From NCBI GenBank assembly GCA_028826165.1, contig JAPDFW010000061.1, positions 486,775-550,774 of the forward strand: a stretch of 64,000 nucleotides of DNA, given 5' to 3'. Both the position numbers and the translations under genes were made by a program. Origin of the DNA: Anaeramoeba ignava BMAN. Its lineage: Eukaryota; Protista; Anaeramoebae. Under the pieces are notes generated by a model, which had not been told where the DNA came from, did not search any database, and saw only the letters and a list, made by a program, of their open reading frames with translations. Positions 10,590 through 38,322 of this stretch are shown here, piece after piece. Position 1 is the first letter of the stretch; each line of letters starts with the position of its first letter.

Positions 10590-11232
10590 AAAAATTTCAA
10601 CAAAATTTTATTCAAAGTCGAGCAGGTATTTCTTATAAGCAATATAACTCTGCTGCATGGCATCCAGTTTTAGATACAGGAAGAATTGAAAGACAAGATT
10701 TAACTGGATTTAGTTTGACTTTTATCAGGATTCAAAATTTCGAATTTATTGATTGTTTATTTGGACCTTCAACTTATTTTAATACTAATTTTGAAAATTG
10801 TAAATTTGATGGTTCAAGATTTGAACAAGTTATTTTTATTGCACCTTCAATGATGAGACCAAAACTTGAAAATTGTTCATTTGAAAATGTTGAATTTGTT
10901 AATGTTGATTTTCCTAATAATGTTCCTTTTAAAAATCAAAATTTTAAAGGAAGTATTTTCAAATTATGTAAACTTATCAAATCAAATTTTTCCAAATCAA
11001 ATTTTGATAATTCGAGTTTTATTGATTGTAAAATTGATGGATGTAATTTTCAGGATGTGAAATTAATAATATTTGTATTCCTGAAGAACAATTTAAATCT
11101 AATTTCAAAGGAGCAAAAGTTACAAATTTAATTGATATTTCAAAAGATAAAACAAAAATCAAAGAAATTAAAGAATGGAATGAAGTTCAATCAGATATTG
11201 ATAAATGGAAACAATATAAAGATCAAAAATAA
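10590..11232 (+). pseudogene. 5'-truncated BTB-pentapeptide paralog lacking the BTB domain
   Basis: Begins in the variable linker (FIQSRAGISYKQYNSAAWHPVLDTGRIERQD); no start codon or BTB upstream; 1-nt frameshift near 11050; ends KDQK-TAA like the intact copies. Confidence 0.8.
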
Positions 11233-11435
11233 TTCAATTTAATTTCATTTCCAAATTCTTTTTTTATTTTCCAAATTAATTTTCCAAAATTTTTTTTTCA
11301 TTTTTTTTAATTTCAAATTTTCCAAAATTTAATAATAAAAAAAGCAAAAAAAGTAATTTAATTAATTAAATTTTTTAATAAATAAAATATTTACCTATTC
11401 AAATTAAGAATAAAAAATTTAAAAATAAAAAGAAA

Positions 11436-12452
11436 ATGGAAGATGAAAAACCTAAAAATATTGAACAAGAAAATACAAATTTAAACATAAAACCAATTAA
11501 AATTAATGTAGGAGGGAAAATATTTGAAACATTAACAACAACTTTATCAAAATGGAAAAACTCAAAATTTGAAGAAATTATTACAAATCAAAAACAATTT
11601 CCAATAACAAATGATGGAATAATATTTTTTGATAGAAATCCAAAATATTTTGAAATCATTTTAGATTATTTAAGAACTTCAAAAATTACAATTCCAACAA
11701 AATTTGAAAACAAAAAAGGATTAGAAATTTTAATAGAAGAATCAAAATATTATTCAATTCATTCATTAACACAATTATTAAATGAAAAACTTCAACTTTT
11801 ACAAAGACAAACAATTACTCCAAAAGAATTTAAAAGGTGGAATCAAAATTATGAGATTCACCACTACACACAATACATGCAAGGAGTCAGGAGCGTTGGA
11901 TTTGGACGTGAAAGAATGGAAAGACAAGATTTAACTGGATTTAGTTTCTGGTGGACTGTAATTCAAGATTTTGAATTTATTGATTGTTTATTTGGACCTT
12001 CAACTTATTTTGATACTAATTTTAAAAATTGTAAATTTGATGGTTCAAGATTTGAACAAGTTATTTTTCAAGAACCAAAACTTGAAAATTGTTCATTTGA
12101 AAATGTTGAATTTGTTAATGTTGATTTTCCTAATAATGTTCCTTTTAAAAATCAAAATTTTAAAGGAAGTATTTTCAAATTATGTAAACTTATCAAATCA
12201 AATTTTTCCAAATCAAATTTTGATAATTCAAGTTTTATTGATTGTAAATTTGATAAATGTGATTTTTCAGGATGTGAAATGAATAATATTTGTATTCCTG
12301 AAGAACAATTTAAAACTTGCAATACAAAAGGAGCAAAAGTTAAAAATTTGATTGATATTTCAAAAGATAAAACAAAAATTAAAGAAATTAAAGAATGGAA
12401 TGAAGTTCTATTAGATATTGATAAATGGAAACAACATAAAGATCAAAAATAA
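11436..12452 (+). CDS. KCTD9-like BTB/POZ + pentapeptide-repeat protein
   Basis: IKINVGGKIFET, FFDRNPKYFEIILDYLR and ESKYYSI (T1-type BTB); F-x4 periodic repeats; intronless. Confidence 0.9.
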   Translation: MEDEKPKNIEQENTNLNIKPIKINVGGKIFETLTTTLSKWKNSKFEEIITNQKQFPITNDGIIFFDRNPKYFEIILDYLRTSKITIPTKFENKKGLEILIEESKYYSIHSLTQLLNEKLQLLQRQTITPKEFKRWNQNYEIHHYTQYMQGVRSVGFGRERMERQDLTGFSFWWTVIQDFEFIDCLFGPSTYFDTNFKNCKFDGSRFEQVIFQEPKLENCSFENVEFVNVDFPNNVPFKNQNFKGSIFKLCKLIKSNFSKSNFDNSSFIDCKFDKCDFSGCEMNNICIPEEQFKTCNTKGAKVKNLIDISKDKTKIKEIKEWNEVLLDIDKWKQHKDQK

Positions 12453-12672
12453 TTCAATTTAATTTCATTTTCATCAATTCTTTTTTTATTTTCCAAATTA
12501 ATTTTCCAAAATTTTTTTTTTCATTTCCAAATTCATTTTTTTAATTTCAATTTTCCAAAATTTAATAATAAAAAAAGCAAAAAAAGTAATTAATTAATTA
12601 AATTTTTTAATAAATAAAATATTTACCTATTCAAATTATAAATAAAAAATTTAAAAATAAAAAGAAACAAAA

Positions 12673-13692
12673 ATGGAAGATGAAAAACCTAAAAATATTG
12701 AACAAGAAAATACAAATTTAAACACAAAACCAATCAAAATTAATGTAGGAGGGAAAATATTTGAAACATTAACAACAACTTTATCAAAATGGAAAAATTC
12801 AAAATTTGAAGAAATTATTACAAATCAAAAACAATTTCCAATAATAAATGATGGAATAATATTTTTTGATAGAAATCCAAAATATTTTGAAATCATTTTA
12901 GATTATTTAAGAACTTCAGAAGTTACAATTCCAAAAAAATTAAACAACAAAGAAGGATTAAGCCGTTTAATAAAAGAATCAAAATATTATTCAATTCATT
13001 CATTAACACAATTATTAAATGAAAAAATTCAAGTTTTACAAAGACAATCATTTACAATGAAAGAATTCCAAAGCCAAGCTTATTTGTTTCAAGCAAATAC
13101 ACCAAGAGAACCTTCACATATAAGCCAACCATATATCCCAATTATGGATGCAGGAAGAATAGAAAGACAAGATTTAACTGGATTGAGTTTGACTTTTATC
13201 AGGATTCAAAATTTCGAATTTATTGATTGTTTATTTGGACCTTCAACTTATTTTAATACTAATTTTGAAAATTGTAAATTTGATGGTTCAAGATTTGAAG
13301 GAGTTAATTTCCATAATTCCAAATTCATTGATTGCTCCTTTCAAAATGTTGAATTTGTTAATGTTGAACTTTGGGAATCTTTGTTCAAAACAAAACAAAA
13401 TTTTAAAGGAAGTGTTTTCAAATTATGCACACTTAACAAAACTAATTTTTCCAAATCAATTCTTGATAATTCAAGTTTTATTGATTGCAAAATCATTAAA
13501 TGTAAATTTTCAGGATGTGAAATTAATAATATTTGTATTCCTGAAAAACAATTCAAATCTAATTTCAAAGGAGCAAAAGTTACAAATTTAATTGATATTT
13601 CAAAATATAAAACAAAAATTAAAGAAGTTCAAGAATGGAATGAAGTTCTATTAGATATTGATAAATGGAAACAACATAAAGATCAAAAATAA
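12673..13692 (+). CDS. KCTD9-like BTB/POZ + pentapeptide-repeat protein
   Basis: Tandem paralog with the same motifs. Confidence 0.9.
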   Translation: MEDEKPKNIEQENTNLNTKPIKINVGGKIFETLTTTLSKWKNSKFEEIITNQKQFPIINDGIIFFDRNPKYFEIILDYLRTSEVTIPKKLNNKEGLSRLIKESKYYSIHSLTQLLNEKIQVLQRQSFTMKEFQSQAYLFQANTPREPSHISQPYIPIMDAGRIERQDLTGLSLTFIRIQNFEFIDCLFGPSTYFNTNFENCKFDGSRFEGVNFHNSKFIDCSFQNVEFVNVELWESLFKTKQNFKGSVFKLCTLNKTNFSKSILDNSSFIDCKIIKCKFSGCEINNICIPEKQFKSNFKGAKVTNLIDISKYKTKIKEVQEWNEVLLDIDKWKQHKDQK

Positions 13693-13904
13693 TTCAATTT
13701 AATTTCATTTCCAAATTCTTTTTTTATTTTCCAAATTAATTTTCCAAAATTTTTTTTTTCATTTCCAAATTCATTTTTTAATTTCAATTTTCCAAAATTT
13801 AATAATAAAAAAAGCAAAAAAAGTAATTTAATTAATTAAATTTTTTAATAAATAAAATATTTACCTATTCAAATTTTAATTTAAAAAAAAAAAAAGAAAC
13901 AAAA

Positions 13905-14945
13905 ATGGAAGATGAAAAACCTAAAAATATTGAACAAGAAAATTCAAATTTAAACATAAAACCAATTAGAATTAATGTAGGAGGGAAAATATTTGAAACA
14001 TTAACAACAACTTTATTAAAATGGAAAAATTCAAAATTTGAAGAAATTATTAAAAATCAAAAACAATTTCCAATAATAAATGATGGAATAATATTTTTTG
14101 ATAGAAATCCAAAATATTTTGAAATCATTTTAGATTATTTAAGAACTTCAAAAATTACAATTCCAACAAAATTTGAAAACAAAAAAGGATTAGAGATTTT
14201 GATAAAAGAATCAAAATATTATTCAATTCATTCATTAACACAATTATTAAATGAAAAACTTGAACTTTTTAAAAGACAATCATTTACTCCAAAAGAATTC
14301 AGAAAATGTATTAAAAAAACTTACACAAATAGCGCCATTCCTTTATATCTTTCATTTACGAATAAAACTAATCCTTCTTTTGAATGTGGAAGAATAGAAA
14401 GACATGATTTATCTGGATTGAGTTTAAATAGAGTAGTATTTACTAATTTTGAATTTATTGATTGTTTATTTGGACCTTCAACTTATATTAATACTAATTT
14501 TACAAATTGTAAATTTGATGGTTCAAGATTTGAACAAGTTACTTTTATAGAACCAAAACTGAGTGATCCAAAATTCGAAAATTGTTCATTTGAAAATGTT
14601 GAATTTGTTAATATTCTTTTTCCTAATAATTTTTTCTTTTCAATGCAAAATTTTAAAGGAAGTATTTTCAAATTATGCACATTTAACAAAACTAATTTTT
14701 TCAAATCAAATTTTGATAATTCGAGTTTTATTGATTGTAAAATGACTTTATGTAATTTTTCAGGATGTGAAATGAATAATATTTGTATTCCTGAAGAACA
14801 ATTCAAATCTTGCAATACAAAAGGAACAAAAGTTAAAAATTTGATTGATATTTCAAAATATAAAACAAAAATTAAAGAAGTTCAAGAATGGAATGAAGTT
14901 CTATCAGATATTGATAAATGGAAACAATATAAAGATCAAAAATAA
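13905..14945 (+). CDS. KCTD9-like BTB/POZ + pentapeptide-repeat protein
   Basis: Tandem paralog with the same motifs. Confidence 0.9.
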   Translation: MEDEKPKNIEQENSNLNIKPIRINVGGKIFETLTTTLLKWKNSKFEEIIKNQKQFPIINDGIIFFDRNPKYFEIILDYLRTSKITIPTKFENKKGLEILIKESKYYSIHSLTQLLNEKLELFKRQSFTPKEFRKCIKKTYTNSAIPLYLSFTNKTNPSFECGRIERHDLSGLSLNRVVFTNFEFIDCLFGPSTYINTNFTNCKFDGSRFEQVTFIEPKLSDPKFENCSFENVEFVNILFPNNFFFSMQNFKGSIFKLCTFNKTNFFKSNFDNSSFIDCKMTLCNFSGCEMNNICIPEEQFKSCNTKGTKVKNLIDISKYKTKIKEVQEWNEVLSDIDKWKQYKDQK

Positions 14946-15157
14946 TTCAATTTAATTTCATTTTCATCAATTCTTTTTAAAAAAAAAGCAAATATTTTTT
15001 TTGTTTTTTTTTTATTTACTTTTAAAAAAAAGAATCCAAATTTATTCAAGAAAAAAAAATTTTTTTTCTTCTTCTTTTTCTTTTTCTTCTTCTTTTTTTA
15101 AAAAAAGGATAATTTGTTTTGTTTTCTTTTTTTTTGAGGAGCAAAAGAAAAATTGAA

Positions 15158-18100
15158 TTAAAGATATAAATCGCGTTGACCTTTTTTGATTTTCTCGATA
15201 TTTTTCCTAGTCAATTCCCTTGTTGAAGGATTAGGGATATTTGGCAATTCTTTAGAAATAGTTTCCCAACCGATTTTAGCGGTTTCTTTTGGGGCGTAAT
15301 CAATCAAGTATTCAGCAGTAGTAGTTAAAGCATTTGGAAGACACATATTAGCGATATCACCTTTTTTGGCAATTTTCATAAAGTTTTCGCCAGTTCTTCC
15401 TAGTCTGTAGCATCCAGTACAAAAAGATGGAACAAATCCATCTTTGAGTAAGTCTTGAATTACTTGGTCAGTGTTTCTTTGATCCGAAATTGAAAATTGT
15501 CCTTTGCTTTCGCTGTTTTGTTTCTCCTTTGAATATGACCCAACGCTTGTTATGCTTCCTGCTGATATCTGGCTTACCCCAAGTTTCATTACTTCTTTTC
15601 GCATCTCTGTTGTTTCTCGTGTTGATAATATCATCCCTGTGTAAGGTACAGAACATCGAAGTATCGCAACTATTTTTTTAAATGTTATGTCGTCAATTGC
15701 ATAAGGTGGATTGTATGCTAATGGTGTGTTTTTGGCTGGTCGGATTCTTGGAACACCTTTTTAATTTTTAATTTAAATTAATTTTTAATTTTTAATTTTA
15801 AATTAATTTTTAAATTCATTTTTAAATTCATTTTTAAATTAATTTTTAAATTTATTTGTAAATTCTAAATTAATTTTTAAATTCATTTCTAAATTTATTT
15901 TTAAATTCATTTTTAAATTCATTTTTAAATTCATTTTTAAATTCATTTTTAAATTCATTTTTAAATTCATTTTTAAATTCATTTCTAAATTAATTTTTAA
16001 ATTCATTTTTAAATTCATTTTTAAATTCATTTTTAAATTCATTTTTAAATTCATTTTTAAATTCATTTTTAATTTCATTTTTAAATTCATTTTTAATTTT
16101 TAAATTCATTCTTAAATTCATTTTTAATTTCATTTTTAAATTCATTTTTAAATTCATTTTTAAATCCATTTTTAAATTCTAAATTAATTTTTAAATTAAT
16201 TTTTAATTTCATTTTTAAATCCATTTTTAAATTCATTTTTAAATTAATTTCTAAATTCATTTCTAAATTCATTTCTAAATTCATTTTTAAATTCATTTTT
16301 AAATTAATTTTTAAATTTATTTGTAAATTCTAAATTCATTTTTAAATTAAATTCTAAATTAATTTTTAAATTCATTTTTAATTTCATTTTTAAATTCATT
16401 TTTAATTTTTAAATTCATTTCTAAATTCATTTTTAAATTAATTTTTAAATTAATTTTTAAATCCATTTTTAAATTCATTTTTAAATTCATTTTTAAATTC
16501 ATTTTTAAATTCATTTCTAAATTCATTTTTAAATTCATTTTTAAATTCATTTCTAAATTCATTTTTAAATTCATTTTTAAATTCATTCTTAAATTCATTT
16601 TTAAATTCATTTTTAAATTCTAAATTGTTAAATTGTAAATCTATCTTTAAATAAGATTTTTACTAATTGTATGTGGTCCTGCATGATATGCTTTATCTAA
16701 ATGTTGCGCATGTTGTAATAAACTAAGAACTTCAAATCTATAATCAAAAAGACCATAAAGAGCACCAATACCTAAATAAATTAAATAAATCAATGAAATC
16801 AATTAAATCAAATAAATCAATCAAATTAAATCAAATAATAAAATAAATACCAATATCATCCATTCCTCCAATTTGTGCTCTATCCATAGTAAGTAATCGA
16901 TATTCATAATCAGATTTTGCTCCATTTGGATGCATTTTATTGAAAGAATCTCTGTGATAAGTTTCTTGAAAAAGTGTATAAGTTCCAACACAATTAGTTG
17001 CTTTTAATCTTTTGAAATCAGAAACACTTAAAGCTGGAATTTCAACATTTATTCTTCTTATTTCACCATGAGGAGGTGATTTAACAGCATATGCAGTTTT
17101 AAGAGCATCAAGAAATTCATCAAAAGGATAAATAGGATGTTCTCCAGTTAACATAAGTATTCTTTTGTGTCCTTGATTTTCAAGTGCAATAACTTCATTA
17201 ATAAGTTCTTGTTTTGTTAATTTTGATCTTGGAATATCAGTATTTGAACCACGATATCCACAATAAAGACATCCTCCAGTACAATAATTTGATACATATA
17301 AAGGTGCAAATAAAACAATTCGATTTCCATATATTCTTTGTTTAATAAATAATGCTGTATTGAAAAGTTCATCTAATAAATCTTTGTTTTTTGTATCCAT
17401 ATTTAAAAGTGTTGCTGTTTCTTCTAATGTTAATCCTTGTACAAATTCATCTTTTAAATCTTCTTTTATATTCTTTAATAATGCATGATCTTTCGCTTTT
17501 TCAAGTATTTCTTTTATTGCATATTTATCTTTTGCTTTTTTTTTCGTTTTTTCAAGTGCTTCAAATATTTTATCTTCTTGAATAATATCTCTAACATCAG
17601 GAAGTTTATAATTTGTATCTCTTTCAGGAGACCAAGAAGTTCCTTTCATTTTCAATTTTTGATTTTGATTTTAATTTTGATTTTAATTTTAATTTTAATT
17701 TTAATTTTAATTTTGATTTTGATTTTAATTTTAATTTTGATTTTGATTTTGATTTTAATTTTGATTTTAATTTTAATTTTGATTTTAATTTTGATTTTGA
17801 TTTTTAATTTTGATTTTGATTTTAATTTTGATTTTGATTTTAATTTTGATTTTGATTTTGATTTTGATTTTAATTTTAATTTTAATTTTAATTTTAATTT
17901 TAATTTTGATTTTGATTTTGATTTTGATTTTGATTTTAATTTTAATTTTAATTTTAATTTTAATTTTGATTTTGATTTTGATTTTGATTTTAATTTTAAT
18001 TTTAATTTTAATTTTAATTTTAATTTTGATTTTGATTTTTGATTTTGAATTTGATTTTGATTTTAATTTTAATTTTAATTTTGATTTTAATTTTAATTTT

Positions 18101-19352: not shown

Positions 19353-20480
19353 TCAAAAACATTTTTTGTGAACTATTGAAGGTCCAGATTCTTTATATTC
19401 TTCTTTTGAAATCCACATATTTTGGAAAGTAGAAAGAGAAGCTAAAATAGATCCTCCAATCCAAGTTAAATATTTTCTTTCAGGAGGTGCAATTACTTTA
19501 ACTTCCATATTAAGAGGAGCTAATTGATTAATTTCTTTTTGAAATCTATCAGAAATTCCTGGAAACATTGTTGAACCTCCTGATAAAATAATATTTCCAT
19601 AAAGATCTTTTCTACAAAAAACATCATAGTTCATAATTGAATTATAAGTTAGCTCATGAATTCCTGGTTGTGACATTTCAATAAAAAAAGGTTGAAATAA
19701 AACTTCTGGACATCTAAATCTTTCATTTCCGATTGTAATAATTTCTCCATCAGGTAATTCATAATTCTTTTCAATAGAATTAGATTCAGCAGCATTATCC
19801 ATTTCTTGATCAAAATCTAAAGCAACATAACAAAGTTTTTCTTTGATATCCTTAACAATTTCTCTTTCAGCAACTGTGGAAAATGAATATCCTCTTTCAG
19901 TCAAGATTTTCATTAAGTAATCAGTTAAACCTCTTCCTCCTAAATCCAGTCTTTTTATTGCATGAGGTGAAGCATATCCTTCATAAATTGGAACAGTATG
20001 AGAAACACCATCTCCAATTTCAACAACAATTCCTGTTGTTTTTCCTGAAGTATAAAGTGATAAAACTGATGAAATAGCAATATACATTGCTGGAGTATTA
20101 AATGTTTCAAACATAATTTCTGTCATTTTCTCTTTGTTTGCTTTTGGATTGAATGGAACTTCAGTTAATAAGACTGGATGTTCTTCAGGAGCAACTTTTA
20201 ATTCATTATAAAAAATATGATTCCAAATTTTTTCCATATCATCCCAATTTGTTACTATTCCATATTCTATTGGATATTTCAATGTTAATATCCCTCTTTT
20301 GGATTGTGCTTCATCTCCAACATATGAATCTTTTTGTCCCATTCCAACCATAACTCCTAAATGTCTTGGTCTTCCTACTATTGATGGAAAAACTGCTTTT
20401 GGTGCATCATCTCCTGCATATCCTGCTTTCATTATTCCTGAACCATTATCAATAACTATTGCTGCAGTATCATCACCCAT
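19353..20480 (-). CDS. Divergent actin, copy 1 (intact, 375 aa)
   Basis: [48 protein letters not shown]; intronless. Confidence 0.95.
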
Positions 20481-20886
20481 TTTTATTTTTTTAATAATAA
20501 AAAAAGAGGAAAATTGTTATTCTTTTTTATTTTTAAATTTATATTTTTTTGGAAAATAAAAAAATGAAAAAAAGGAAAAAAAGGAAAAAAAAGCAAAAAA
20601 AAAATAATTAAAAAGTGGAATTTTATTATTTTTTGTTTTTTGATTTAAATAATAAATAAAATAAATTAATCTAAAAAAAATAAAGTGGAATAAAAATCTA
20701 AAATTCTTTTTCTTTTTTTTTATTGAATCAAAATTCAAATTGAAAAAATAAATTTTTAAATTAAAAATAATTGAGAAAATAATTGATTTAAATAATTTTA
20801 AATCTTTTTTTTTTGATTAAATGAAAGAAAGATTAAAAGAAAGAAAGATTAAAATTAAAGAAATTAAAATTTGGAATTTGATTCTT

Positions 20887-22022
20887 TCAAAAACATTTTT
20901 GTGAACTATTGAAGGTCCAGATTCTTCATATTCTTCTTTTGAAATCCACATATTTTGGAAAGTAGAAAGAGAAGCTAAAATAGATCCTCCAATCCAAGTT
21001 GAATATTTTCTTTCAGGAGGTGCAATAATTTTAACTTTCATATTAGGAGGAGCTAATTGATTAATTTCTTTTTGAAATCTATCAGAAATTCCTGGAAACA
21101 TTGTTGAACCTCCTGATAAAACAATATTTCCATAAAGATCTTTTCTTATATCATCATCACATTTCATAATTGAATTATAAGTCAGTTCATGAATTCCTGG
21201 TTTATCAATTCCAATAAAAGAAGGATTGAATAAAAGTTCTGGATATCTAAATCTTTCATTTCCGATTGTAATAACTTGACCATCAGGTAATTCATAATTC
21301 TTTTCAATAGAATTAGATTTAGCAGCAATATCCATTTCTTGATCAAAATCTAAAGCAACATAACAAAGTTTTTCTTTGATATCGGAATAAATTCTCATTT
21401 TAGAGAATTGTGAAATTGTTTTAATCGAGTAATTTCCGAAAACTCTTTCTTGATTAAAATATTCAGTTAAATCTCTTCCTCCTAAATCAATTCTTTGTAT
21501 TGAAGAAACAAAACCAAAATCTTCATAGATGGAAAAAATATGAGTAACACCATCTCCAATTTCAACAACAGTTCCTGTTGTTCTTCCTAAAGCATAAAGT
21601 GATAAAGTTGGTGAAATAGCAACATACATTGCTGGTGTATTAAATGTTTCAAACATAATTTGTGTCATTTTCTCTCTGTTTGTTTTTGGATTCAATGGAA
21701 CTTCAGTTAATAAGACTGGATGTTCTTCAGGAGCAACTCTTAATTCATTATAAAAAGTATGATTCCAAATTTTTTCCATATCATCCCAATTTGTTACTAT
21801 TCCATATTCTATTGGATATTCCAATGTTAATATCCTTTTGGATTGAGCTTCATCTCCAACATATGAATCTTTTTGTCCCATTCCTAGATGTACTAAATTT
21901 CTTGGTCTTCCTACTATTGATGGGAAAACTGTTCTTGGTGCATCATTTCCTGCAAATCCTGCTTTAATCATTGATGAACCATTATCAATAACTATTGCTG
22001 CAATATCATCATCATCACCCAT
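20887..22022 (-). CDS. Divergent actin, copy 2 (1-nt homopolymer loss at the C-terminus, likely an error)
   Basis: Full actin motif set; the TGA homologous to copy 1 is at 20887-20889, while the ORF track reads through to 20817. Confidence 0.88.
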
Positions 22023-22432
22023 TTTTATTTTTTTAATAATAAAAAAAAAGGAAAATTGTTATTCTTTTTTATTTTTAAATTTATATTTTTTGGAAAATAA
22101 AAAAATGAAAAAAATGGAAAAAAAGGAAAAAAAGGAAAAAAAAAAAATTAATTAAAAAGTGGAATTTTATTATTTTTTGTTTTTTGATTTAAATAATAAA
22201 TAAAATAAATTAATCTAAAAAAAATAAAGTGGAATAAAAATCAAAATTCTTTTTCTTTTTTTTTATTGAATAAAAATTCAAATTGAAAAAATAAATTTTT
22301 AAATTAAAAATAATTGAGAAAATAATTGAGAAAATAATTGAGAAAATAATTGATTTAATTGATTTTAAATCTTTTTTTTTTGATTAAAAGAAAGATTAAA
22401 TTAAAGAAATTAAAATTTGGAATTTGATTCTT

Positions 22433-23550
22433 TCAAAAACATTTTCTGTGAACTATTGAAGGTCCAGATTCTTCATATTCTTCTTTTGAAATCCACATAT
22501 TTTGGAAAGTAGAAAGAGAAGCTAACTTAGATCCTCCAATCCAAGTTGAATATTTTCTTTCAGGAGGTGCAATAATTTTAACTTCCATATTAGGAGGAGC
22601 TAATTGAGTAATTTCTTTTTGAAGTCTATCAGAAATTCCTGGAAACATTGTTGAACCTCCTGATAAAACAATATTTCCATAAAGATCTTTTCTTATATCA
22701 TCATCACATTTCATAATTGATTTATAAGTCATTTCATGAATTCCTAGTTCATCGAATTCAATAAAAGAAGGTTGAAATAAAAGTTCTGGACATCTAAATC
22801 TTTCATTTCCGATTGTAATAATTTCTCCATTATCTAATTCATAATCCTTTTCAATAGAAGAAGATTCAGCAGCAATATCCATTTCTTCATCAAAATTCAA
22901 AGCAACATAACAAAGTTTTTCTTTGATATTCTTAGCAATTTCTCTTTCAGCAGTTGTTACAAATGAATTTCCTCTTTCATTCAAGATTTTCATTAAGTAA
23001 TCAGTTAAATCTCTTCCTCCTAAATCCATTCTTTTTATTGCATGAGGTAAAGCATATCCATCATAAATTGGAACAACAAAAGAAACACCATCTCCAATTT
23101 CAACAACAGTTCCTGTTAATCTTCCTGAAGCATAAAGTGATAAAGTTGGTGAAATAGCAACATGCATTGCTGGAGTATTAAATGTTTCAAACATAATTTG
23201 TGTCATTTTCTCTTTGTTTTTGGATTGAATGGAACTTCAGTTAAAAAGACTGAATGTTCTTCAGGAGATACTCTTAATTCATTATAAAAAGTATGATGCC
23301 AAATTTTTTCCATATCATCCCAATTTGTTACTATTCCATATTCTATTGGATATTTCAATGTTAATTTTCCTCTTTTGGATTGAACTTCATCTCCAACATA
23401 TGAATCTTTTTGTCCTAGATATACTAATTTTCTTACTCTTCCTACTATTGTTGGGAAAACTGCTTTTGGTGCATCATCTCCTGCAAATCCTGCTTTAATC
23501 ATTCCTGAACCATTATCAATAACTAATGCTCCAATATCATCATCATCCAT
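22433..23550 (-). CDS. Divergent actin, copy 3, frameshifted near 23215 (pseudogene or error)
   Basis: Two abutting ORFs cover the N- and C-terminal parts; about 4 nt missing relative to paralogs at NPKTN. Confidence 0.8.
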
Positions 23551-25319: not shown

Positions 25320-26505
25320 AATTCATTTTTAAATAAGATTTTTACTAATTGTATGTGGTCCTGCATGATATGCTTTATCTAAATGTTGTGCATGTTGTAA
25401 TAAACTAAGAACTTCAAATCTATAATCAAAAAGACCATAAAGAGCACCAATACCTAAATAAATCAAATAAATTAAATCAAATAAATAAATTAAATCAAAT
25501 AAATCAAATAAATTAAATCAAATAATAAAATAAATACCAATATCATCCATTCCTCCAATTTGTGCTCTATCCATAGTAAGTAATCGATATTCATAATCAG
25601 ATTTTGCTCCATTTGGATGCATTTTATTGAAAGAATCTCTATGATAAGTTTCTTGAAAAAGTGTATAAGTTCCAACACAATTAGTTGCTTTTAATCTTTT
25701 GAAATCAGAAACACTTAAAGCTGGAATTTCAACATTTATTCTTCTTATTTCACCATGTGGAGGTGATTTAACAGCATATGCAGTTTTAAGAGCATCAAGA
25801 AATTCATCAAAAGGATAAATAGGATGTTCTCCAGTTAACATAAGTATTCTTTTATGTCCTTGATTTTCAAGTGCAATAACTTCATTAATAAGTTCTTGTT
25901 TTGTTAATTTTGATCTTGGAATATCAGTATTTGAACCACGATATCCACAATAAAGACATCCTCCAGTACAATAATTTGATACATATAAAGGTGCAAATAA
26001 AACAATTCGATTTCCATATATTCTTTGTTTGATAAATAATGCTGTATTGAAAAGTTCATCTAATAAATCTTTGTTTTTTGTATCCATATTTAAAAGTGTT
26101 GCTGTTTCTTCTAATGTTAATCCTTGTACAAATTCATCTTTTAAATCTTCTTTTATATTCTTTAATAATGCATGATCTTTCGCTTTTTCAAGTATTTCTT
26201 TTATTGCATATTTATCTTTTGCTTTTTTTTTCGTTTTTTCAAGTGCTTCAAATATTTTATCTTCTTGAATAATATCTCTAACATCAGGAAGTTTATAATT
26301 TGTATCTCTTTCAGGAGACCAAGAAGTTCCTTTCATTTTCAATTTTTGATTTTGATTTTAATTTTAATTTTAATTTTAATTTTAATTTTAATTTTGATTT
26401 TGATTTTAATTTTGATTTTAATTTTAATTTTAATTTTGATTTTAATTTTGATTTTAATTTTAATTTTGATTTTGATTTTGATTTTGATTTTGATTTTGAT
26501 TTTTT
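25320..26505 (-). pseudogene. hydG: Partial duplicate of hydG (exons 2 and 3 only, with intron stubs)
   Basis: The 274-aa ORF is identical to 16831-17655; neither the presequence exon nor the last exon is adjacent. Confidence 0.8.
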
Positions 26506-26545
26506 AAAATTTCATTTTTTTTCTTCTTTTGAAATTTTTTTTTTA

Positions 26546-28830
26546 ATGAATGAAATATTTTTAATCAATCAAAGGGATATTAATAAAAAAACAACAATCC
26601 AACTAAATATTGAAGGGGAAATAAAAGAAATATCATCCGGTACAATAGGGACATTAATATTAACAACAACGGGAAAAGTATATGAATATCACGAAAAAAA
26701 AGTCAAACTCAAATTTGATGAAGCAAAAAAAGCAAGAGTTGCATTTTCGCATTTTTTAATACTAAAAGAAGACGGAAATGTTTATGGATATGGAAGAAAT
26801 CGGTCGGCTTATTTGCCCCCGAAAAATGGGGACACAAAGGAGTTTACCGAGCCAATTAAATTGCCATTTTTTGAGGAAAATGGAATTGAAATTATTGATA
26901 TTTGTGTTGGATGCTGTCAATGTTATTATCTTTCCAAAAACTACACTTTATATGCAAGTGGGCATAATTCAAGAAGTGAACTTGGTTTGGAAGAAAGAAA
27001 AAGCGAGGTTTATCCGCCTCAAGTTGTTGCTTTAAATGTTAAAAGACTTTTTAGTGATGATTATTCTTTTTTCTTTTTTTATGAAGATTTTAATCAGAAT
27101 TTTTTTGCTTCTGGTGAAAATGGAACAGGTCAATTGGGTATTGGTTCTCCTGATTCTCCTAAAATACCTCAGATTGTCCCTGATTTATGCAATAAAAAAG
27201 TGATTACTATTTCTTGTGGTTATCAACATTCAATTGCTATTATTGAAGAAGAAAATGGGAATCAAGATGTAAACAATTGATATAAAATTGATATAAAATT
27301 GATATAAAATTGATATAAAATTGATATAAAATTGATATAAAATTGATATAAAATTAATATAAAATAGATTTAAAATTGATTTAAAATTGATTTAAAATTG
27401 ATTTAAAATTGATTTAAAATTAATATAAAATTAATATAAAATTGATTTAAAATTGATTTAAAATTGATTTAAAATTGATTTAAAATTGATTTAAAATTGA
27501 TTTAAAATTGATTTAAAATTGATATAAAATTGATTTAAAATTGATTTAAAATTGATTTAAAATTGATATAAAATTGATTTAAAATTAATATAAAATTAAT
27601 ATAAAATTGATTTAAAATTGATATAAAATTGATTTAAAATTGATATAAAATTGATATAAAATTGATATAAAATTGATTTAAAATTGATATAAAATTGATA
27701 TAAAATTGATATAAAATTGATATAAAATTGATATAAAATTGATTTAAAATTAATTTAAAATTAATATAAAATTAATATAAAATTGATTTAAAATTGATTT
27801 AAAATTAATTTAAAATTGATATAAAATTGATTTAAAATTAATATAAAATTAATGATTTCTCTTTTTATTTTAGAAACCTTTCCATCAAATATGGATAGCA
27901 GGTGGGCCATTTAAAACAGATTACAAATTCCGGAAAATTGAAAGATTTGAAGAAAGAAGAGTGATTTCAGTTACATCACATTGTTGGGATGGTTGCCTAT
28001 TAACAGACAGAGGAGAAATCTATGATTACAATAAAAACAGGGATTTTGAAAATGAAATCAAACCAGAATATCTCAATCCAATTTCTTACATAAATAACTA
28101 TCGGATTGAATTTGGAATCTCATCATTGATTTATCAAGCTGCAGAAGATTTCATCTTAATAGAAGATCTTCAGAAATTACTTGAAAATCAAGAAATGACA
28201 GATTTTCAAATTCAAGGAATTGATGGATCAATCCATAAAGCACATCAACTTATTGTTCAAACAAGATTTTGTCGATCCAAAAAAACTTCGATTGAAAAAA
28301 TCACACAGTGTTTATCTCAAAAAACAAAAAAGGAGATCCAGTCTTTTTTACAGTTTGTTTATACTGGAAAAACTTTATATTTCAAGGAAATTTCAGAAAT
28401 TGGAAAAGAATTGGGAATTGAAAATATTAATGAAAAATTTGGAGGATCAAGGAAAGTTAGAAAATCAATTATAAAACTATTTAGTGATGAGGAAACAAAA
28501 GATTTTGCAATAGTTGTTAAAGACAAAGAAATTCGTGTTCACAAAATCATTTTACTTGCAAGAAGTGATTTATTTCGAGGAATGTTTTTGAGTGTTGTTG
28601 ATGATTTCTCAAATAAAGTTAGTGATTATAGTCAAAGAAGTTTCAAACAAATTTATTCTATTATTCGCATCCTTTATTTTGATCAAATTGATTCTCAAAC
28701 AGATTCAAAAACTATTAATGATTTTCAAGATGTGATTGATTATTATCAATTAAATCCAAGAATGAGAGAATTAATTAAGAATCGAAATGAAAAAATGAAT
28801 AGAAGAAAATTTAAACAAAAAGAAAAATAA
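26546..28830 (+). CDS. RCC1-like repeat + tandem BTB domain protein (exons 26546-27268, 27874-28830)
   Basis: SGHNSRSELG, GENGTGQLG, ISCGYQHSIA; TDFQI..HKAHQLIV and KDFAIV..IRVHKIILLARSDLFRGMF; the phase-0 intron restores the frame. Confidence 0.88.
27276..27852. repeat. Intronic 11-bp tandem repeat (TGATWTAAAAT)n
   Basis: Visible tandem repeat inside the GT-AG intron. Confidence 0.9.
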
Positions 28831-31812: not shown

Positions 31813-33241
31813 ATGGGTTCAAAAAAAAAGAATACAAAAGATAAAAAAGAAAGTGCTCCAAAAAAACCAAGAAATGCTTATTTTCTTTTTGCAGCTGATA
31901 TTCGAGAAGAAATAACTCAAGCAAATCCAGGAATTAAAGTTGGTGAAATTTCTAAAATTACAGGTCAAAGATGGAAAGGAGTTGATGAAGAAACAAAGAA
32001 AGTAATTGTTATTTTTTGAAAGGAAAGAAAAAATTTTTCCTTTTAGAATTTTGATGAAAAAAAAAATTTATTTTGATCAATTCAGATAAAAATAAAAAAA
32101 TCATTTGATTATTTAATTTGATTATTTAACGGAAACTTGATTAAAATTTAAATTGATTAAGATTTAATTTGATTATTTAATTTGATTAAGATTTAATTTG
32201 ATTAAAATTTAAATTGATTAAGATTTAATTTGATTATTTAATTTGATTAAGATTTAATTTGATTAAAATTTAATTTGATTAAAATTTAAATTGATTAAGA
32301 TTTAATTTGATTAAGATTTAATTTGATTAAGATTTAATTTGATTAAGATTTAATTTGATTAAAATTTAATTTGATTAAAATTTAATTTGATTAAAATTAA
32401 AATTAAAATTAAAATTAAAATTAAAATTGATTAAAATTTAATTTGATTAAAATTTAATTTGATTAAAATTTAATTTGATTAAGATTTAATTTGATTAAGA
32501 TTTAATTTGATTAAGATTTAATTTGATTAAAATTTAATTTGATTAAAATTTAATTTGATTAAAATTAAAATTAAAATTAAAATTAAAATTAAAATTAAAA
32601 TTTAAATTAAAATTAAAATTAAAATTAAAATTTAATTAAATCTAGAAATACCAAAAACAAGCTGAAGAAGAAAAAGGTAAATATGAAAAATTAATGGAAG
32701 AATATCGAAAAGCACATCCAGAACCATCAGAAAGTTCTGATAGTGACAGTAACAAAAAGAAAAGAAAAGGAAAAAGAAAAGGAAAGAAAAAGGGAAAGAA
32801 AAAGAAATCAAAAAAAGATCCTAATGCACCAAAAGGACCTCAAAATGCTTATATGCTTTATGCTGCTGATGTTCGTCCTAAATTAATTCAAGATAACAAA
32901 GGAATGAGAGTTGGAGAAATTTCCAAAATAATCGGAAAACAATGGAAAGAACTTGATGAAGATGTTAAAAGAGTAAATTTAATTTTGATTTTATTTCCTT
33001 TCAAATTTTGGGAAATTTTTTTGATTATTTTTCTTCCTTTCAAATTTTTATTTAATTTTTAATTTTTTAATTTTTAAATTTTAAATAGAAATATCAAGAT
33101 CAAGCCAAAAAAGATCGAGAAGAATACAACAAAAAAATGGAAGAATATAAGAAGAATAAAAAGGAAACTTCTGAAAGTTCTGATACATCTGATTCATCTG
33201 ATACATCTTCAGATTCCGACAGTTCAACTTCAACTGATTAG
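31813..33241 (+). CDS. HMGB-type protein with two HMG boxes and a Ser/Asp-rich tail (exons 31813-32001, 32646-32972, 33089-33241)
   Basis: APKKPRNAYFLF...GEISKITGQRWK and KKDPNAPKGPQNAYMLY...GEISKIIGKQWK; phase-0 introns. Confidence 0.92.
32140..32640. repeat. Intronic 16-bp repeat (GATTAARATTTAATTT)n plus (AAAATT)n
   Basis: Fills HMG intron 1. Confidence 0.85.
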
Positions 33242-33483: not shown

Positions 33484-34521
33484 TTATTTTTGATCTTTAT
33501 GTTGTTTCCATTTATCAATATTTGATAGAATTTCATTCCATTCTTTAATTTCTTTGATTTTTGTTTTATCTTTTGAAATATCAATCAAATTTTTAACTTT
33601 TGCTCCTTTTGTATTACAAGATTTAAATTGCTTTTCAGGAATACAAATATTATTCATTTCACATCCTGAAAAATCACATTTATCAAATTTACAATCAATA
33701 AAACTTGAATTATCAAAATTTGATTTGGAAAAATTTGATTTGATAAGTTTGCAAAATTTGAAAACACTTCCTTTAAAATTATGATTTTGAAAAGAAACAT
33801 TATTAGGAAAATTAACATTAACAAATTCAACATTTTGAAATGAACATTTTTCAAATTTTGGTCTCATCATTGAAGGTGCAGTAAAAATAACTTGTTCAAA
33901 TCTTGAACCATCAAATTTACAATTTTCAAAATTAGTATCAAAATAAGTTGAAGGTCCAAATAAACAATCAATAAATTCAAAATTCTTGAAACGAATTGTA
34001 CTGAAACTAAATCCAGTTAAATCTTGTCTTTCAATTCTTTTGGTATCTAAAATTGGATAAAGAGCAGTATTACTTCCATAATGTTGAATAGGAGTATTTG
34101 ATTCACTATGTTGAATACATTTTCTGAATTCTTTTGGAGTAAATGTTTGTCTTTTAAAAACTTCAAATTTTTCATTTAATAATTGTGTTAATGAATGAAT
34201 TGAATAATATTTTGATTCTTTTATTAAAATCTCTAATCCTTTTTTGTTTTCAAGTTTTGTTGGAATTGTAATTTCTGAAGTTCTTAAATAATCTAAAATG
34301 ATTTCAAAATATTTTGGATTTCTATCAAAAAATATTATTCCATCATTTATTATTGGAAATTGTTTCTGATTTGTAATAATTTCTTCAAATTTTGAATTTT
34401 TCCATTTTAATAAAGTTGTTGTTAATGTTTCAAATATTTTCCCTCCTACATTAATTTTGATTGGTTTTATGTTTAAATTTGTATTTTCTTGTTCAATATT
34501 TTTAGGTTTTTCATCTTCCAT
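33484..34521 (-). CDS. KCTD9-like BTB + pentapeptide-repeat protein
   Basis: Same motifs as the first array. Confidence 0.9.
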   Translation of the reverse strand: MEDEKPKNIEQENTNLNIKPIKINVGGKIFETLTTTLLKWKNSKFEEIITNQKQFPIINDGIIFFDRNPKYFEIILDYLRTSEITIPTKLENKKGLEILIKESKYYSIHSLTQLLNEKFEVFKRQTFTPKEFRKCIQHSESNTPIQHYGSNTALYPILDTKRIERQDLTGFSFSTIRFKNFEFIDCLFGPSTYFDTNFENCKFDGSRFEQVIFTAPSMMRPKFEKCSFQNVEFVNVNFPNNVSFQNHNFKGSVFKFCKLIKSNFSKSNFDNSSFIDCKFDKCDFSGCEMNNICIPEKQFKSCNTKGAKVKNLIDISKDKTKIKEIKEWNEILSNIDKWKQHKDQK

Positions 34522-34753
34522 TTCTTTTTTTTTTAAATTAAAATTTTTATTCTTAATTTGAATAAGTAAATATTTTATTTATTAAAAAATTACTTTTTTG
34601 CTTTTTTTTCTCTTTTTTTATTATTAAATTTGAAAATTTGAAATTAAAAAAATGAAATTAAGAAAATAAAAATAAAATTAATTTGAGAATTAGGATTAAA
34701 TTTTTTTTTGAAAATTGAAAAAATAAAGAATTTGGAAATTAAATTAAATTAAA

Positions 34754-35791
34754 TTATTTTTGATCTTTATGTTGTTTCCATTTATCAATATTTGATAGAA
34801 TTTCATTCCATTCTTTGATTTCTTTGATTTTTGTTTTATCTTTTGAAATATCAATTAAATTTTTAACTTTTGCTCCTTTTGTATTACAAGATTTAAATTG
34901 TTCTTCAGGAATACAAATATTATTCATTTCACATCCTGAAAAATTACATCCATCAATTTTACAATCAATAAAACTTGAATTATCAAAATTTGATTTGGAA
35001 AAATTAGATTTGATAAGTTTGCAAAATTTGAAAACACTTCCTTTAAAATTATGATGTTTAAAAGGAACATTATTAGGAAAATTAACATTAACAAATTCAA
35101 CATTTTGAAATGAACATTTTTCCAACTTTGGTCCACGAAATATTGGCTCAGTAAAAATAACTTGTTCAAATCTTGAACCATCAAATTTACAATTTTCAAA
35201 ATTAGTATCAAAATAAGTTGAAGGTCCAAATAAACAATCAATAAATTCAAAATTCTTGAATATAACTGTACTGAAACTAAATCCAGTTAAATCTTGTCTT
35301 TCAACTCTTCCTGTATCTAAAATTGGATAACGAGTACCATTAGGTCCATAAGGTTGAATAGGAATATTTGATTCACTATGATGAATACATTTTCTGAATT
35401 CTTTTGGAGTAAATGTTTGTCTTTTAAAAACTTCAAGTTTTTCATTTAATAATTGTGTTAATGAATGAATTGAATAATATTTTGATTCTTTTATTAAAAT
35501 CTCTAATCCTTTTTTGTTTTCAAGTTTTGTTGGAATTGTAATTTCTGAAGTTCTTAAATAATCTAAAATGATTTCAAAATATTTTGGATTTCTATCAAAA
35601 AATATTATTCCATCATTTATTATTGGAAATTGTTTCTGATTTGTAATAATTTCTTCAAATTTTGAATTTTTCCATTTTGATAAAGTTGTTGTTAATGTTT
35701 CAAATATTTTCCCTCCTACATTAATTTTGATTGGTTTTATGTTTAAATTTGTATTTTCTTGTTCAATATTTTTAGGTTTTTCATCTTCCAT
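34754..35791 (-). CDS. KCTD9-like BTB + pentapeptide-repeat protein
   Basis: Tandem paralog. Confidence 0.9.
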   Translation of the reverse strand: MEDEKPKNIEQENTNLNIKPIKINVGGKIFETLTTTLSKWKNSKFEEIITNQKQFPIINDGIIFFDRNPKYFEIILDYLRTSEITIPTKLENKKGLEILIKESKYYSIHSLTQLLNEKLEVFKRQTFTPKEFRKCIHHSESNIPIQPYGPNGTRYPILDTGRVERQDLTGFSFSTVIFKNFEFIDCLFGPSTYFDTNFENCKFDGSRFEQVIFTEPIFRGPKLEKCSFQNVEFVNVNFPNNVPFKHHNFKGSVFKFCKLIKSNFSKSNFDNSSFIDCKIDGCNFSGCEMNNICIPEEQFKSCNTKGAKVKNLIDISKDKTKIKEIKEWNEILSNIDKWKQHKDQK

Positions 35792-36025
35792 TTCTTTTTT
35801 TTTTTTAAATTAAAATTTTTGTTCTTAATTTGAATAAGTAAATATTTTATTTATTAAAAAATTACTTTTTTGCTTTTTTTTCTCTTTTTTTATTATTAAA
35901 TTTGAAAAAATGAAATTAAAAAAATGAAATTAAAAAAATAAAAATAAAATTAATTTGAGAATTAGGATTAAATTTTTTTTTGAAAATTGAAAAAATAAAG
36001 AATATGGAAATTAAATTAAATTAAA

Positions 36026-37063
36026 TTATTTTTGATCTTTATGTTGTTTCCATTTATCAATATTTGATAGAATTTCATTCCATTCTTGAACTGCTTCTAT
36101 TTTTACTTTATCTTTTGAAATATCAATCAAATTTGTAAATTTTGCTCCTTTTGTATTACAAGATTTAAATTGTTCTTCAGGAATACGAATATTATTCATT
36201 TCACATCCTGAAAAATCACATCCATCAATTTTACAATCAATAAAACTTGAATTATCAAAATTTGATTTGGAAAAATTAGATTTGATAAGTTTGCAAAATT
36301 TGAAAACACTTCCTTTAAAATTATGATGTTTAAAAGGAACATTATTAGGAAAATTAACTTTAACAAATTCAACATTTTGAAATGAACATTTTTCAAATTT
36401 TGGTCTCTTCATTGAAGGTGCAATAAAAATAACTTGTTCAAATCTTGAACCATCAAATTTACAATTTTTAAAATTAGTATCAAAATAAGTTGAAGGTCCA
36501 AATAAACAATCAATAAATTCAAAATTCTTGAATAGAATAGTTCTGAAAGTAAATCCAGTTAAATCTTGTCTTTCCATTCTTCCTATATTAAATATTGAAT
36601 AAGGAATACCATTAGGTCCATAAGGTTGAGTATGAAAAGTTGATTCACTATGAAGAATACATTTCCTGAATTCTTTTAGAGTAAATGTTTGTCTTTTAAA
36701 AAGTTGAACTTTTTCATTTAATAATTCTGTTAATGAATGAATTGAATAATATTTTGATTCTTTTATTAAAATTTCTAATCCTTCTTTGTTGTTTAGTTTT
36801 GTTGGAATTGTAATTTCTGAAGTTCTTAAATAATCTAAAATAATTTCGAAATATTTTGGATTTCTATCAAAAAATATTATTCCATCATTTATTATTGGAA
36901 ATTGTTTTTGATTTGTAATAATTTCTTCAAATTTTGAATTTTTCCATTTTAATAAAGTTGTTGTTAATGTTTCAAATATTTTCCCTCCTACATTAATTTT
37001 AATTGGTTTTATGTTTAAATTTGTATTTTCTTGTTCAATATTTTTGGGTTTTTCATCTTCCAT
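36026..37063 (-). CDS. KCTD9-like BTB + pentapeptide-repeat protein
   Basis: Tandem paralog. Confidence 0.9.
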   Translation of the reverse strand: MEDEKPKNIEQENTNLNIKPIKINVGGKIFETLTTTLLKWKNSKFEEIITNQKQFPIINDGIIFFDRNPKYFEIILDYLRTSEITIPTKLNNKEGLEILIKESKYYSIHSLTELLNEKVQLFKRQTFTLKEFRKCILHSESTFHTQPYGPNGIPYSIFNIGRMERQDLTGFTFRTILFKNFEFIDCLFGPSTYFDTNFKNCKFDGSRFEQVIFIAPSMKRPKFEKCSFQNVEFVKVNFPNNVPFKHHNFKGSVFKFCKLIKSNFSKSNFDNSSFIDCKIDGCDFSGCEMNNIRIPEEQFKSCNTKGAKFTNLIDISKDKVKIEAVQEWNEILSNIDKWKQHKDQK

Positions 37064-37284
37064 TTCTTTTTATTTAAATTAAATTTTTTGTTCTTAATTT
37101 GAATAAGTAAATATTTTATTTATTAAAAAATTACTTTTTTGCTTTTTTTTATTATTAAATTTGAAAATTTGAAATTAAAAAAATGAAATTAAGAAAATAA
37201 AAATAAAATTAATTTGAGAATTAGGATTAAATTTTTTTTTGAAAATTGAAAAAATAAAGAATTTGGAAATTAAATTAAATTAAA

Positions 37285-38322
37285 TTATTTTTGATCTTTA
37301 TGTTGTTTCCATTTATCAATATTTGATCGAATTTCATTCCATTCTTTGATTTCTTTGATTTTTGTTTTATCTTTTGAAATATCAATCAAATTTGTAAATT
37401 TTGCTCCTTTTGTATTACAAGATTTAAATTGTTCTTCAGGAATACGAATATTATTCATTTCACATCCTGAAAAATTACATCCATCAATTTTACAATCAAT
37501 AAAACTTGAATTATCAAAATTTGATTTGGAAAAATTAGATTTGATAAGTTTGCATAATTTGAAAATACTTCCTTTAAAATTTTGATTGGAAAATGGAACA
37601 TTACTAGGAAAATTAACTTTAACAAATTCAACATTTTGAAATGAACATTTTTCAAATTTTGGTTTCATCATTGAAGGTGCAATAAAAATAACTTGTTCAA
37701 ATCTTGAACCATTAAACCAACAATTTTCAAAATTAGTATTAAAATAAGTTGAAGGTCCAAATAAACAATCAATAAATTCAAAATTCTTGAATAGAATAGA
37801 TCTGAAACTAAATCCAGTTAAATCTTGTCTTTCAATTCTTCCTGTATCCATAACTGGATGTGGAGTACTATGAGTTCCATAAGGCTCAACAGGAAAACTT
37901 GTTTCACTATGAAGAATACATTTCCTGAATTCTTTTGGAGTAAATGTTTGTCTTTTAAAAAGTTGAACTTTTTCATTTAATAATTGTGTTAATGAATGAA
38001 TTGAATAATATTTTGATTCTTCTAGCAAAATTTCTAATCCTTCTTTGTTGTTTAGTTTTGTTGGAATTGTAATTTTTGAAGTTCTTAAATAATCTAAAAT
38101 GATTTCAAAATATTTTGGATTTCTATCAAAAAATATTATTCCATCATTTATTATTGGAAATTGTTTTTGGTTTGTAATAATTTCTTCAAATTTTGAATTT
38201 TTCCATTTTGATAAAGTTGTTGTTAATGTTTCAAATATTTTCCCTCCTACATTAATTTTAATTGGTTTTATGTTTAAATTTGTATTTTCTTGCTCAATAT
38301 TTTTAGGTTTTTCATCTTCCAT
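37285..38322 (-). CDS. KCTD9-like BTB + pentapeptide-repeat protein
   Basis: Tandem paralog. Confidence 0.9.
   Translation of the reverse strand: MEDEKPKNIEQENTNLNIKPIKINVGGKIFETLTTTLSKWKNSKFEEIITNQKQFPIINDGIIFFDRNPKYFEIILDYLRTSKITIPTKLNNKEGLEILLEESKYYSIHSLTQLLNEKVQLFKRQTFTPKEFRKCILHSETSFPVEPYGTHSTPHPVMDTGRIERQDLTGFSFRSILFKNFEFIDCLFGPSTYFNTNFENCWFNGSRFEQVIFIAPSMMKPKFEKCSFQNVEFVKVNFPSNVPFSNQNFKGSIFKLCKLIKSNFSKSNFDNSSFIDCKIDGCNFSGCEMNNIRIPEEQFKSCNTKGAKFTNLIDISKDKTKIKEIKEWNEIRSNIDKWKQHKDQK

Follow-up and report, generated by a model that had tools for sequence, protein, structure and literature searches.

A tandem BTB-pentapeptide gene family of Anaeramoeba ignava that evolves in concert around sharply bounded islands of divergence

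A BTB_2 domain followed by a pentapeptide beta-solenoid is the common plan of KCTD9 in animals and of dictyostelid KHA-BTB-pentapeptide proteins such as D. purpureum XP_003288545.1, which share a T-x-K-E/D-F/V connector motif directly after the BTB domain; FIP2 of plants, Cavenderia fasciculata XP_004360299.1 and Polysphondylium violaceum KAF2076351.1 likewise place pentapeptides after a BTB domain, without KHA. To our knowledge, BTB-pentapeptide proteins (KCTD9, FIP2) are usually single-copy, and neither tandem multiplication nor a variable connector has been reported for the FIP2 and dictyostelid proteins. FIP2 has been described as BTB plus pentapeptide (PMC6429439), and KCTD9-type BTB domains are predicted or known to form pentamers, those of KCTD9 being predicted to be driven by the BTB domain and to extend into the solenoid (PMC9658877). 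Here, we describe seven intact genes of this architecture (g1 to g7) that lie in two tandem arrays within a 64,000-nt window, positions 486775–550774 of its contig, in the 42.8-Mb, 147-contig Anaeramoeba ignava assembly, and which an earlier note on this DNA had taken for a possible diversifying system of receptors.

Compared with KCTD9 and XP_003288545.1, to which they are 22–29% identical, the A. ignava genes have no N-terminal KHA/ubiquitin-like domain, a connector that is ~12 residues longer and differs from copy to copy, and an extra C-terminal helix, and instead of a lone gene there is a tandem family of seven copies. The FIP2 and dictyostelid proteins without KHA (25–32% identical) differ from them in having long low-complexity N-termini or a UBA domain. 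In its mode of evolution the family resembles the red/green opsins and RHD/RHCE, paralogues that are likewise homogenised by gene conversion save for short stretches and that carry a mosaic phylogenetic signal; sequence-dependent conversion and selection against conversion are known concepts that fit the locus (PMC3449122). The A. ignava genes differ from these pairs in comprising seven copies in two inverted arrays, in having their islands at a domain connector and on one side of a solenoid, and in that the retained differences have no assigned function. The locus is a real and tidy example of a tandem family that evolves in concert and whose islands have sharp bounds; its protein architecture and the concepts that describe it were already known.

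Concerted evolution and islands of divergence

The ORF (open reading frame) listing and alignment gave seven intact, intronless genes of 338–346 amino acids, g1–g3 on the plus strand and g4–g7 on the minus strand. As the earlier note had reported, each has a copy-specific segment after a KEF motif (hereafter the cassette, 27–30 codons), and all seven peptides quoted for it were found. Mean pairwise nucleotide identity is 0.97–1.0 over the BTB domain and falls to 0.44–0.52 in the cassette; pairwise nucleotide distances among g1–g7 are 0.01–0.07 in the former and 0.14–0.69 in the latter, which also carries indels. The smaller variable patches that had been noticed after DLTG and EQVIF are real, and two more were added, at alignment columns 238–249 and 281–285. 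Residual homology of the cassettes at the codon level, for example in N-x-x-I-x-H-Y and Y-x-P-I-x-D elements, rules out that those of g1, g2 and g3 are frameshifted or unrelated insertions.

The arrays have a unit period of 1.22–1.27 kb and are inverted relative to each other, and the inverted-repeat arms between them are interrupted exactly at the cassette. The flanks had been described as nearly identical, which holds within each array (spacer mismatch of 1.4–2.7% in array 2 and 2.4–8% in array 1) and fails between arrays (17–21%). Silent differences were read on a common scale, set to their saturation level under the codon usage found here. On this scale the divergence of the BTB domain was 0.12–0.16 within arrays and 0.13 between them, that of the spacers was 0.04 within and 0.33 between, and that of the cassette was 0.32 within array 2 and ~0.9 in pairs with g1, g2 or g3. 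By these values, homogenisation acts on the BTB domain across the two arrays and on the spacers inside each array, and the cassette is exempt from both. The share of pairs with the same amino acid encoded by a different codon was 17.5% in the cassette, 7.1% in solenoid faces 2 and 3, 5.8% in the C-terminus, 3.9% in the BTB domain and 1.9% in faces 1 and 4. A cassette that merely evolves at the neutral rate was suggested by flank distances averaged over all pairs, a result that was reversed when spacers only were compared; the all-pair average is misleading because it mixes array-edge and between-array flanks.

The alignment outside the cassette contains 78 parsimony-informative sites, and half (50%) of the informative site pairs are incompatible with one tree; the permutation test of the pairwise homoplasy index (PHI) gave p<0.0005 whether the cassette was included or excluded. 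Some variants are common to copies in different arrays: for example, g2 agrees with g6 and g7 at codons 90–94, and at codon 83 g7 has the variant of g1 and g3. An eighth copy, the pseudogene at 10577–11230, is also a mosaic: it carries its own cassette variant, nearest to the g7 type of the other array, and has the first solenoid patch of g2 and a later patch of g1.

These results show concerted evolution: through gene conversion, both inside each array and across the two, the BTB domain, faces 1 and 4 of the solenoid, the C-terminus and the spacers of a given array stay near-identical, silent sites included. The connector formed by the cassette, a 5-residue bulge, and faces 2 and 3 of the solenoid are islands of divergence that retain silent as well as replacement differences, and the cassette is old, copy-specific sequence.

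Homogeneity of this kind could in principle be made by an assembler, if multi-mapping short reads had levelled the repeats during polishing and left the uniquely mappable cassette divergent. The genome was built from Nanopore and Illumina data (PMC11550330), and tandem units of 1.2 kb are prone to such homogenising. However, a public A. ignava transcript, P0005 (EukProt EP01156_P021310), is made up of segments of g2 (1–82), g1 (83–118), g3 (119–196) and again g2 (197–340), each an exact match to its gene in conserved and variable segments alike. Trinity probably assembled it as a chimera from co-expressed paralogues, so that it should not count as an additional gene, and for array 1 it is an independent confirmation of the genomic variants. 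The 78 informative sites of the conserved parts, with their structured sharing among copies, also speak against an artefact, and the distance of ~20% between the spacers of the two arrays indicates that polishing did not blur one array into the other. We consider an artefact very improbable. The same transcript includes the cassette of g3 in frame, so that the cassette is exonic; an intron is ruled out by this and by the open frame of the cassette in every copy.

The cassettes also stand apart in composition. G+C content is ~20% in the window, in line with the 80.65% A+T of the A. ignava genome (PMC11550330), and 10% in the spacers. At first plus second codon positions it is 0.33–0.52 in all seven cassettes vs 0.27–0.29 in the rest of the gene; Pro, Tyr, His, Gly, Arg, Ser and Thr are over-represented in the cassettes, and Lys, Phe, Glu and Asn under-represented. 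Their make-up is thus kept against the AT pressure of the genome while the sequence diverges, that is, composition is conserved. In the g1 cassette 11 of 27 codons end in G or C, vs 6% elsewhere in that gene (binomial p=2e-7).

Architecture, solenoid faces and ring assembly

Pfam placed BTB_2 at residues 21–111 (E 3e-18 to 3e-17) in the five intact genes scanned, with Pentapeptide, Pentapeptide_3 and Pentapeptide_4 above their cut-offs and repeats at ~165–300 in each. The ~20 residues N-terminal of the BTB domain had no Pfam match, which leaves no KHA/ubiquitin-like domain, and the genes therefore resemble the FIP2/dictyostelid form and not KCTD9 itself. The best solved relatives of the BTB domain are those of KCTD and BACURD proteins. 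Foldseek matched the modelled BTB domain to KCTD5, KCTD16 and KCTD17 (TM-score 0.80–0.87 by target length) and the modelled solenoid half best to the bacterial pentapeptide repeat proteins MfpA, AlbG and Qnr (E 2e-7 to 1e-5), which have no BTB domain. After the BTB domain, a T-R/P-K-E/D-F/V motif aligns with the TRKEF/TRKDV of relatives, and the first coil with their NLxGxDLS; the connector of the relatives is shorter, with a TRKEF-type helix and then ~20 residues to the first coil. The KCTD-type BTB domain and pentapeptide beta-solenoid named in the earlier note agree with Pfam, the structure models and Foldseek alike, and the g1–g7 proteins are of the KCTD9/FIP2 type, in which a BTB domain of the T1/KCTD type is joined by a short helical connector to a right-handed pentapeptide beta-solenoid, with a C-terminal helix at the end.

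The best full-length matches, in an exhaustive search, were the FIP2 and dictyostelid BTB/POZ-pentapeptide proteins (E ~1e-15 to 1e-16, in a single stretch across both domains). The nearest BTB plus pentapeptide proteins were 22–32% identical (E 1e-14 to 1e-16), values that do not resolve orthology, and KCTD9 clusters ranked second and sixth in the Atlas feature search. A word-indexed protein search and an exhaustive search of representatives, in which the inclusion of Anaeramoeba proteomes is uncertain, found no relative closer than ~35% identity outside the A. ignava genome, and a metagenome scan with the family alignment returned 600 pattern matches and 0 relatives. In our reading, the seven genes and the pseudogene make up a lineage-specific family in A. 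ignava.

Structures of g4 and g1 were modelled with AlphaFold2, each on a 21-sequence alignment (mean predicted local distance difference test (pLDDT) 79.5 for g4 and 80.6 for g1; predicted TM-score 0.70 for both). The BTB domain and solenoid were modelled with confidence (pLDDT 84–96; solenoid 86–96), and the cassette was the weakest internal stretch of both models (46–73). For residues 131–160 of g4, pLDDT was 67, 53 and 68 per ten-residue block and a short helix followed by two strands was predicted; the g1 cassette (73, 46 and 64, with residues 142–151 below 50) was predicted as a long helix and then coil. In the models, the cassette is thus a connector between BTB domain and solenoid with no consistent predicted fold.

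A solenoid register was set that has the central F or L at the third place of every pentapeptide and allows for one 5-residue bulge (absent from g1 and g2) and one 6-residue unit; it agrees with the strand spacing in the g1 and g4 models. Loops that bulge from the solenoid are also known in Qnr proteins. In this register, extra residue states numbered 36 and 32 on faces 2 and 3 and 7 each on faces 1 and 4 (permutation p=0.005). The ratio of replacement to silent rates (omega) was 0.68 on faces 2 and 3 and 0.51 on faces 1 and 4, neither exceeding 1, and tree length was ~six-fold higher on the former. The concentration of variation on two adjacent faces supports the idea that a constant scaffold bears its variable sites on one side. 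The single binding face that had been proposed for all variable loops gains support for the solenoid sites; the cassette, which is of low confidence and folded differently in the two models, may or may not belong to it.

Oligomerisation of the BTB domain, also named in the earlier note, gained support from a modelled closed ring of four g4 BTB domains and one of g2, which scored 0.82 against 0.00 for the best control, a mark that 51 of 78 solved complexes attained, as did 2 of 108 mismatched pairs. Separate runs agreed in at least 89% of contacts, the partner had pLDDT of at least 84, and the g2 domain contacted two neighbours; the paralogue is accepted into the ring as modelled. The model supports assembly and possible mixed rings, without demonstrating either. 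We also observed that several of the few variable BTB positions (83, 88, 94, 98 and 101) are Lys/Glu switches inside the modelled interface, where they could influence which copies assemble with each other.

At least eight cullin loci are present in the genome, of which six were typed by their best solved relative: five are Cul4-like or Cul1/2-like, and one is Cul3-like, its best PDB match being Cullin-3 (401 bits vs 343 for Cullin-4B). The Cul3-like gene is multi-exon and its typing refers to the largest exon only, with no joined model. In our reading, the g1–g7 proteins are probably cullin-RING adaptors.

Selection, drift and mutation in the cassette

With NG86, the proportions of silent (pS) and replacement (pN) differences in the cassette were 0.49 and 0.45 for all seven genes (ratio 0.88) and 0.16 and 0.22 for the well-aligned g4–g7 (ratio 1.45), and those of the rest of the gene were 0.10 and 0.08. 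GY+F3X4 in IQ-TREE gave an omega of 0.27–0.41 in the cassette and 0.28–0.33 elsewhere, values that are probably too low because the genome is 80% A+T. Our own maximum-likelihood fit of MG94xHKY gave cassette omegas of 0.98 (g4–g7), 0.71 (g3–g7) and 0.50 (all seven), the first two not different from 1 by likelihood-ratio test, and 0.39–0.51, significantly below 1, for the rest of the gene. Cassette tree length was 4.6–8.9 times that of the rest of the gene. By none of NG86, GY+F3X4 and MG94 was omega in the cassette significantly above 1; the cassette is not demonstrably positively selected, nor hypermutating, and its omega is ~0.5–1. Silent and replacement divergence are both raised in it, which indicates old divergence that escapes gene conversion, not fast adaptive change.

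These results bear on the earlier note, which had the variable loops as one binding face of a substrate-recognition repertoire for ubiquitination, possibly against symbiont or viral proteins; on this view the cassette and patches would be positively selected recognition loops of an immune-like system. Several observations speak for it: the variation does not extend beyond the connector and two neighbouring solenoid faces, the cassettes are rich in Tyr, His, Pro, Gly and Ser against AT mutation pressure, the pN of 0.22 in the array 2 cassettes is ~ten times the spacer divergence of 0.02, and patches are reassorted among copies. A BTB ring could be modelled, a Cul3-like gene is present, and the nearest Atlas cluster of BTB-pentapeptide proteins has viral members. 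Diversifying selection, however, was not found, dN/dS being at or below about 1 and never significantly above it by three methods, which is half of the pattern that the note itself had set against its proposal; in the cassette and in faces 2 and 3 alike omega did not differ significantly from 1 in the upward direction, and silent divergence is raised in the same places. The low pLDDT of the cassette and its different shapes in g1 and g4 sit poorly with recognition loops. Positively selected recognition repertoires such as the MHC and plant R genes have dN/dS above 1 at their variable sites and many copies or high allelic polymorphism; neither such a dN/dS nor many copies are seen here: the genome holds seven intact genes and one pseudogene at a single locus, a small germline family and not the large repertoire that had been imagined, and no link to symbionts or viruses was found for it. 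We regard such an adaptive repertoire as clearly unlikely.

The same omega values lend weight to drift. If the connector and exposed faces tolerate change, indels and substitutions may block mismatch-sensitive conversion there, after which redundant paralogues would go on drifting apart; the idea of sequence-dependent conversion with 'terminator' heterologies is well established (Walsh 1987, as reviewed in PMC3449122) and counts for this explanation. The omega of ~1 (0.98) among the alignable cassettes, the cassette indels, the low model confidence and the joint rise of silent and replacement divergence all agree with it. What counts against it is that the non-coding spacers differ by 1.4–8% within arrays, although no less freedom to vary would be expected of them, and that the cassettes keep a GC-rich make-up with Pro, Tyr, His and Gly against spacers of 10% GC. 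Moreover, islands of ~30 nt every 60 nt in the solenoid are hard to obtain through ordinary conversion tracts unless something favours them. Escape by drift is a possibility that we take seriously and yet hold to be fairly unlikely.

Targeted hypermutation of the cassette, for example by a retroelement-guided, template-driven diversifier, would give the sharp boundaries that the variable segment has. A genome search with the g1 cassette found no second, template or donor copy, all four bases vary similarly (28–53%) with no adenine bias, and no reverse transcriptase was found among the eight neighbouring ORFs scanned with Pfam; the variation, furthermore, is between germline paralogues and not within one copy. 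Mutagenesis in the manner of diversity-generating retroelements is rejected on the absent template copy and the lack of adenine bias, and we give targeted hypermutation of any kind practically no credence. Even taken together, an artefact and hypermutation remain very improbable.

We therefore favour, as probable though with some reserve, the reading that g1–g7 carry old paralogue-specific surfaces on a homogenised cullin-adaptor scaffold, whichever force, selection or escape from conversion, maintains the islands. The near-identical BTB domains would form rings, which are probably pentamers and in which paralogues probably also mix, these rings would dock on a Cullin-3-like cullin, and the copy-specific connector and solenoid side would give each paralogue its own partner surface. 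The homogenised spacers set against the kept cassette differences, and the conserved composition of the cassette, argue that the retained differences matter.

Several points weigh against this reading. Short-read polishing of a tandem array could have inflated the homogeneity of the conserved parts, and the alignment of the g1 and g2 cassettes to the others is near saturation. Tree-based omega assumes no recombination, an assumption that is violated outside the cassette. The assignment of faces depends on our own sequence register, checked against DSSP strand spacing only. The ring, for which BTB domains only were modelled, may stem from solved KCTD pentamers that the program has memorised, and the evidence for expression is a single chimeric public transcript, which covers array 1 only.

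A bolder reading is a germline combinatorial recognition set, in which BTB domains kept near-identical by conversion would form mixed pentamers on a Cullin-3 ligase and selection against conversion would keep the Tyr/His/Pro-rich connector and faces 2 and 3 different in each copy, so that many surface combinations would arise, for example toward proteins of the sulfate-reducing symbionts, prey or viruses. We think it clearly unlikely.

The locus, its neighbours and its meaning

Coordinates are collected in Table 1. The family had been taken to begin at 10590, a position that lies inside the headless, frameshifted eighth copy and not in an intact gene. GenBank holds a spliced model of this pseudogene, KAJ5076447.1, under the name 'antibiotic resistance protein mcbg', which derives only from the type of pentapeptide repeat. 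No further BTB-solenoid copies were found elsewhere in the 42.8-Mb genome, in which g1–g7 account for seven of the ten BTB_2 matches.

Table 1. Features of the window, with positions counted from its first nucleotide
Feature	Position	Strand	Remarks
Pseudogene (eighth copy)	10577-11230	+	headless, without BTB; starts just before cassette; one-base frameshift near 11050
Array 1 repeat units	11231-13904	+	~1.23 kb; spacers 11231-11435, 12453-12672, 13693-13904
g1	11436-12452	+	338 aa; BTB_2 + pentapeptide solenoid; cassette 11832-11912; solenoid 11925-12302
g2	12673-13692	+	339 aa; cassette 13069-13155
g3	13905-14945	+	346 aa; cassette 14301-14390, found in transcript P0005
BATS-domain piece	15158-15634		probably part of first radical-SAM ORF
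Microsatellite arrays	15676-16340, 17650-18040, 39272-39760		12-nt and 6-nt units
Radical-SAM ORFs	16831-17655, 25518-26342		274 aa each
Actin paralogues (four)	19353-25093		~1.53-kb spacing; truncated copy 22433-23206
RCC1-repeat and classical BTB ORFs	within 26300-28830		probably single gene
HMG-box ORF	32694-33062		
g4	33484-34521	-	345 aa; cassette 34039-34125; structure modelled
Array 2 repeat units	34522-37284	-	~1.27 kb; spacers 34522-34753, 35792-36025, 37064-37284
g5	34754-35791	-	345 aa; cassette 35309-35395
g6	36026-37063	-	345 aa; cassette 36581-36667
g7	37285-38322	-	345 aa; cassette 37840-37926
LOG/lysine-decarboxylase-like ORF	38488-38949		
UCH-type deubiquitinase, start	39357-40049		just past array 2

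Between the two BTB-solenoid arrays lie four tandem actin paralogues, of which one is truncated and one has a C-terminal extension. Plant FIP2 is a formin-binding protein; the position of an actin array beside FIP2-related genes may or may not be a coincidence. The actin array is flanked by two identical radical-SAM ORFs (HydG/ThiH-like, with a CxxxCxxC motif) on the same strand and 8687 bp apart, a pair suggestive of either a segmental duplication of very recent date or a multi-exon gene that is split. Further neighbours from the ubiquitin system are an ORF with RCC1 repeats followed by one with a classical BTB domain (PF00651), and the start of the UCH-type deubiquitinase. The frames of the microsatellite arrays read N-F-D-F, L-I or K-S; these stretches are intergenic low-complexity DNA that yields spurious long ORFs.

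The connector and the two variable faces mark a candidate binding surface, and so give a direct hypothesis for where the BTB-pentapeptide class binds. On a small and clean scale, the locus also shows how differences can persist locally between duplicated genes while gene conversion acts strongly on them, in a eukaryotic lineage that has symbionts and has been little studied. Should the paralogues turn out to have different partners, they would represent a new kind of cullin-adaptor diversification; should they not, they would be an ordinary family evolving in concert.

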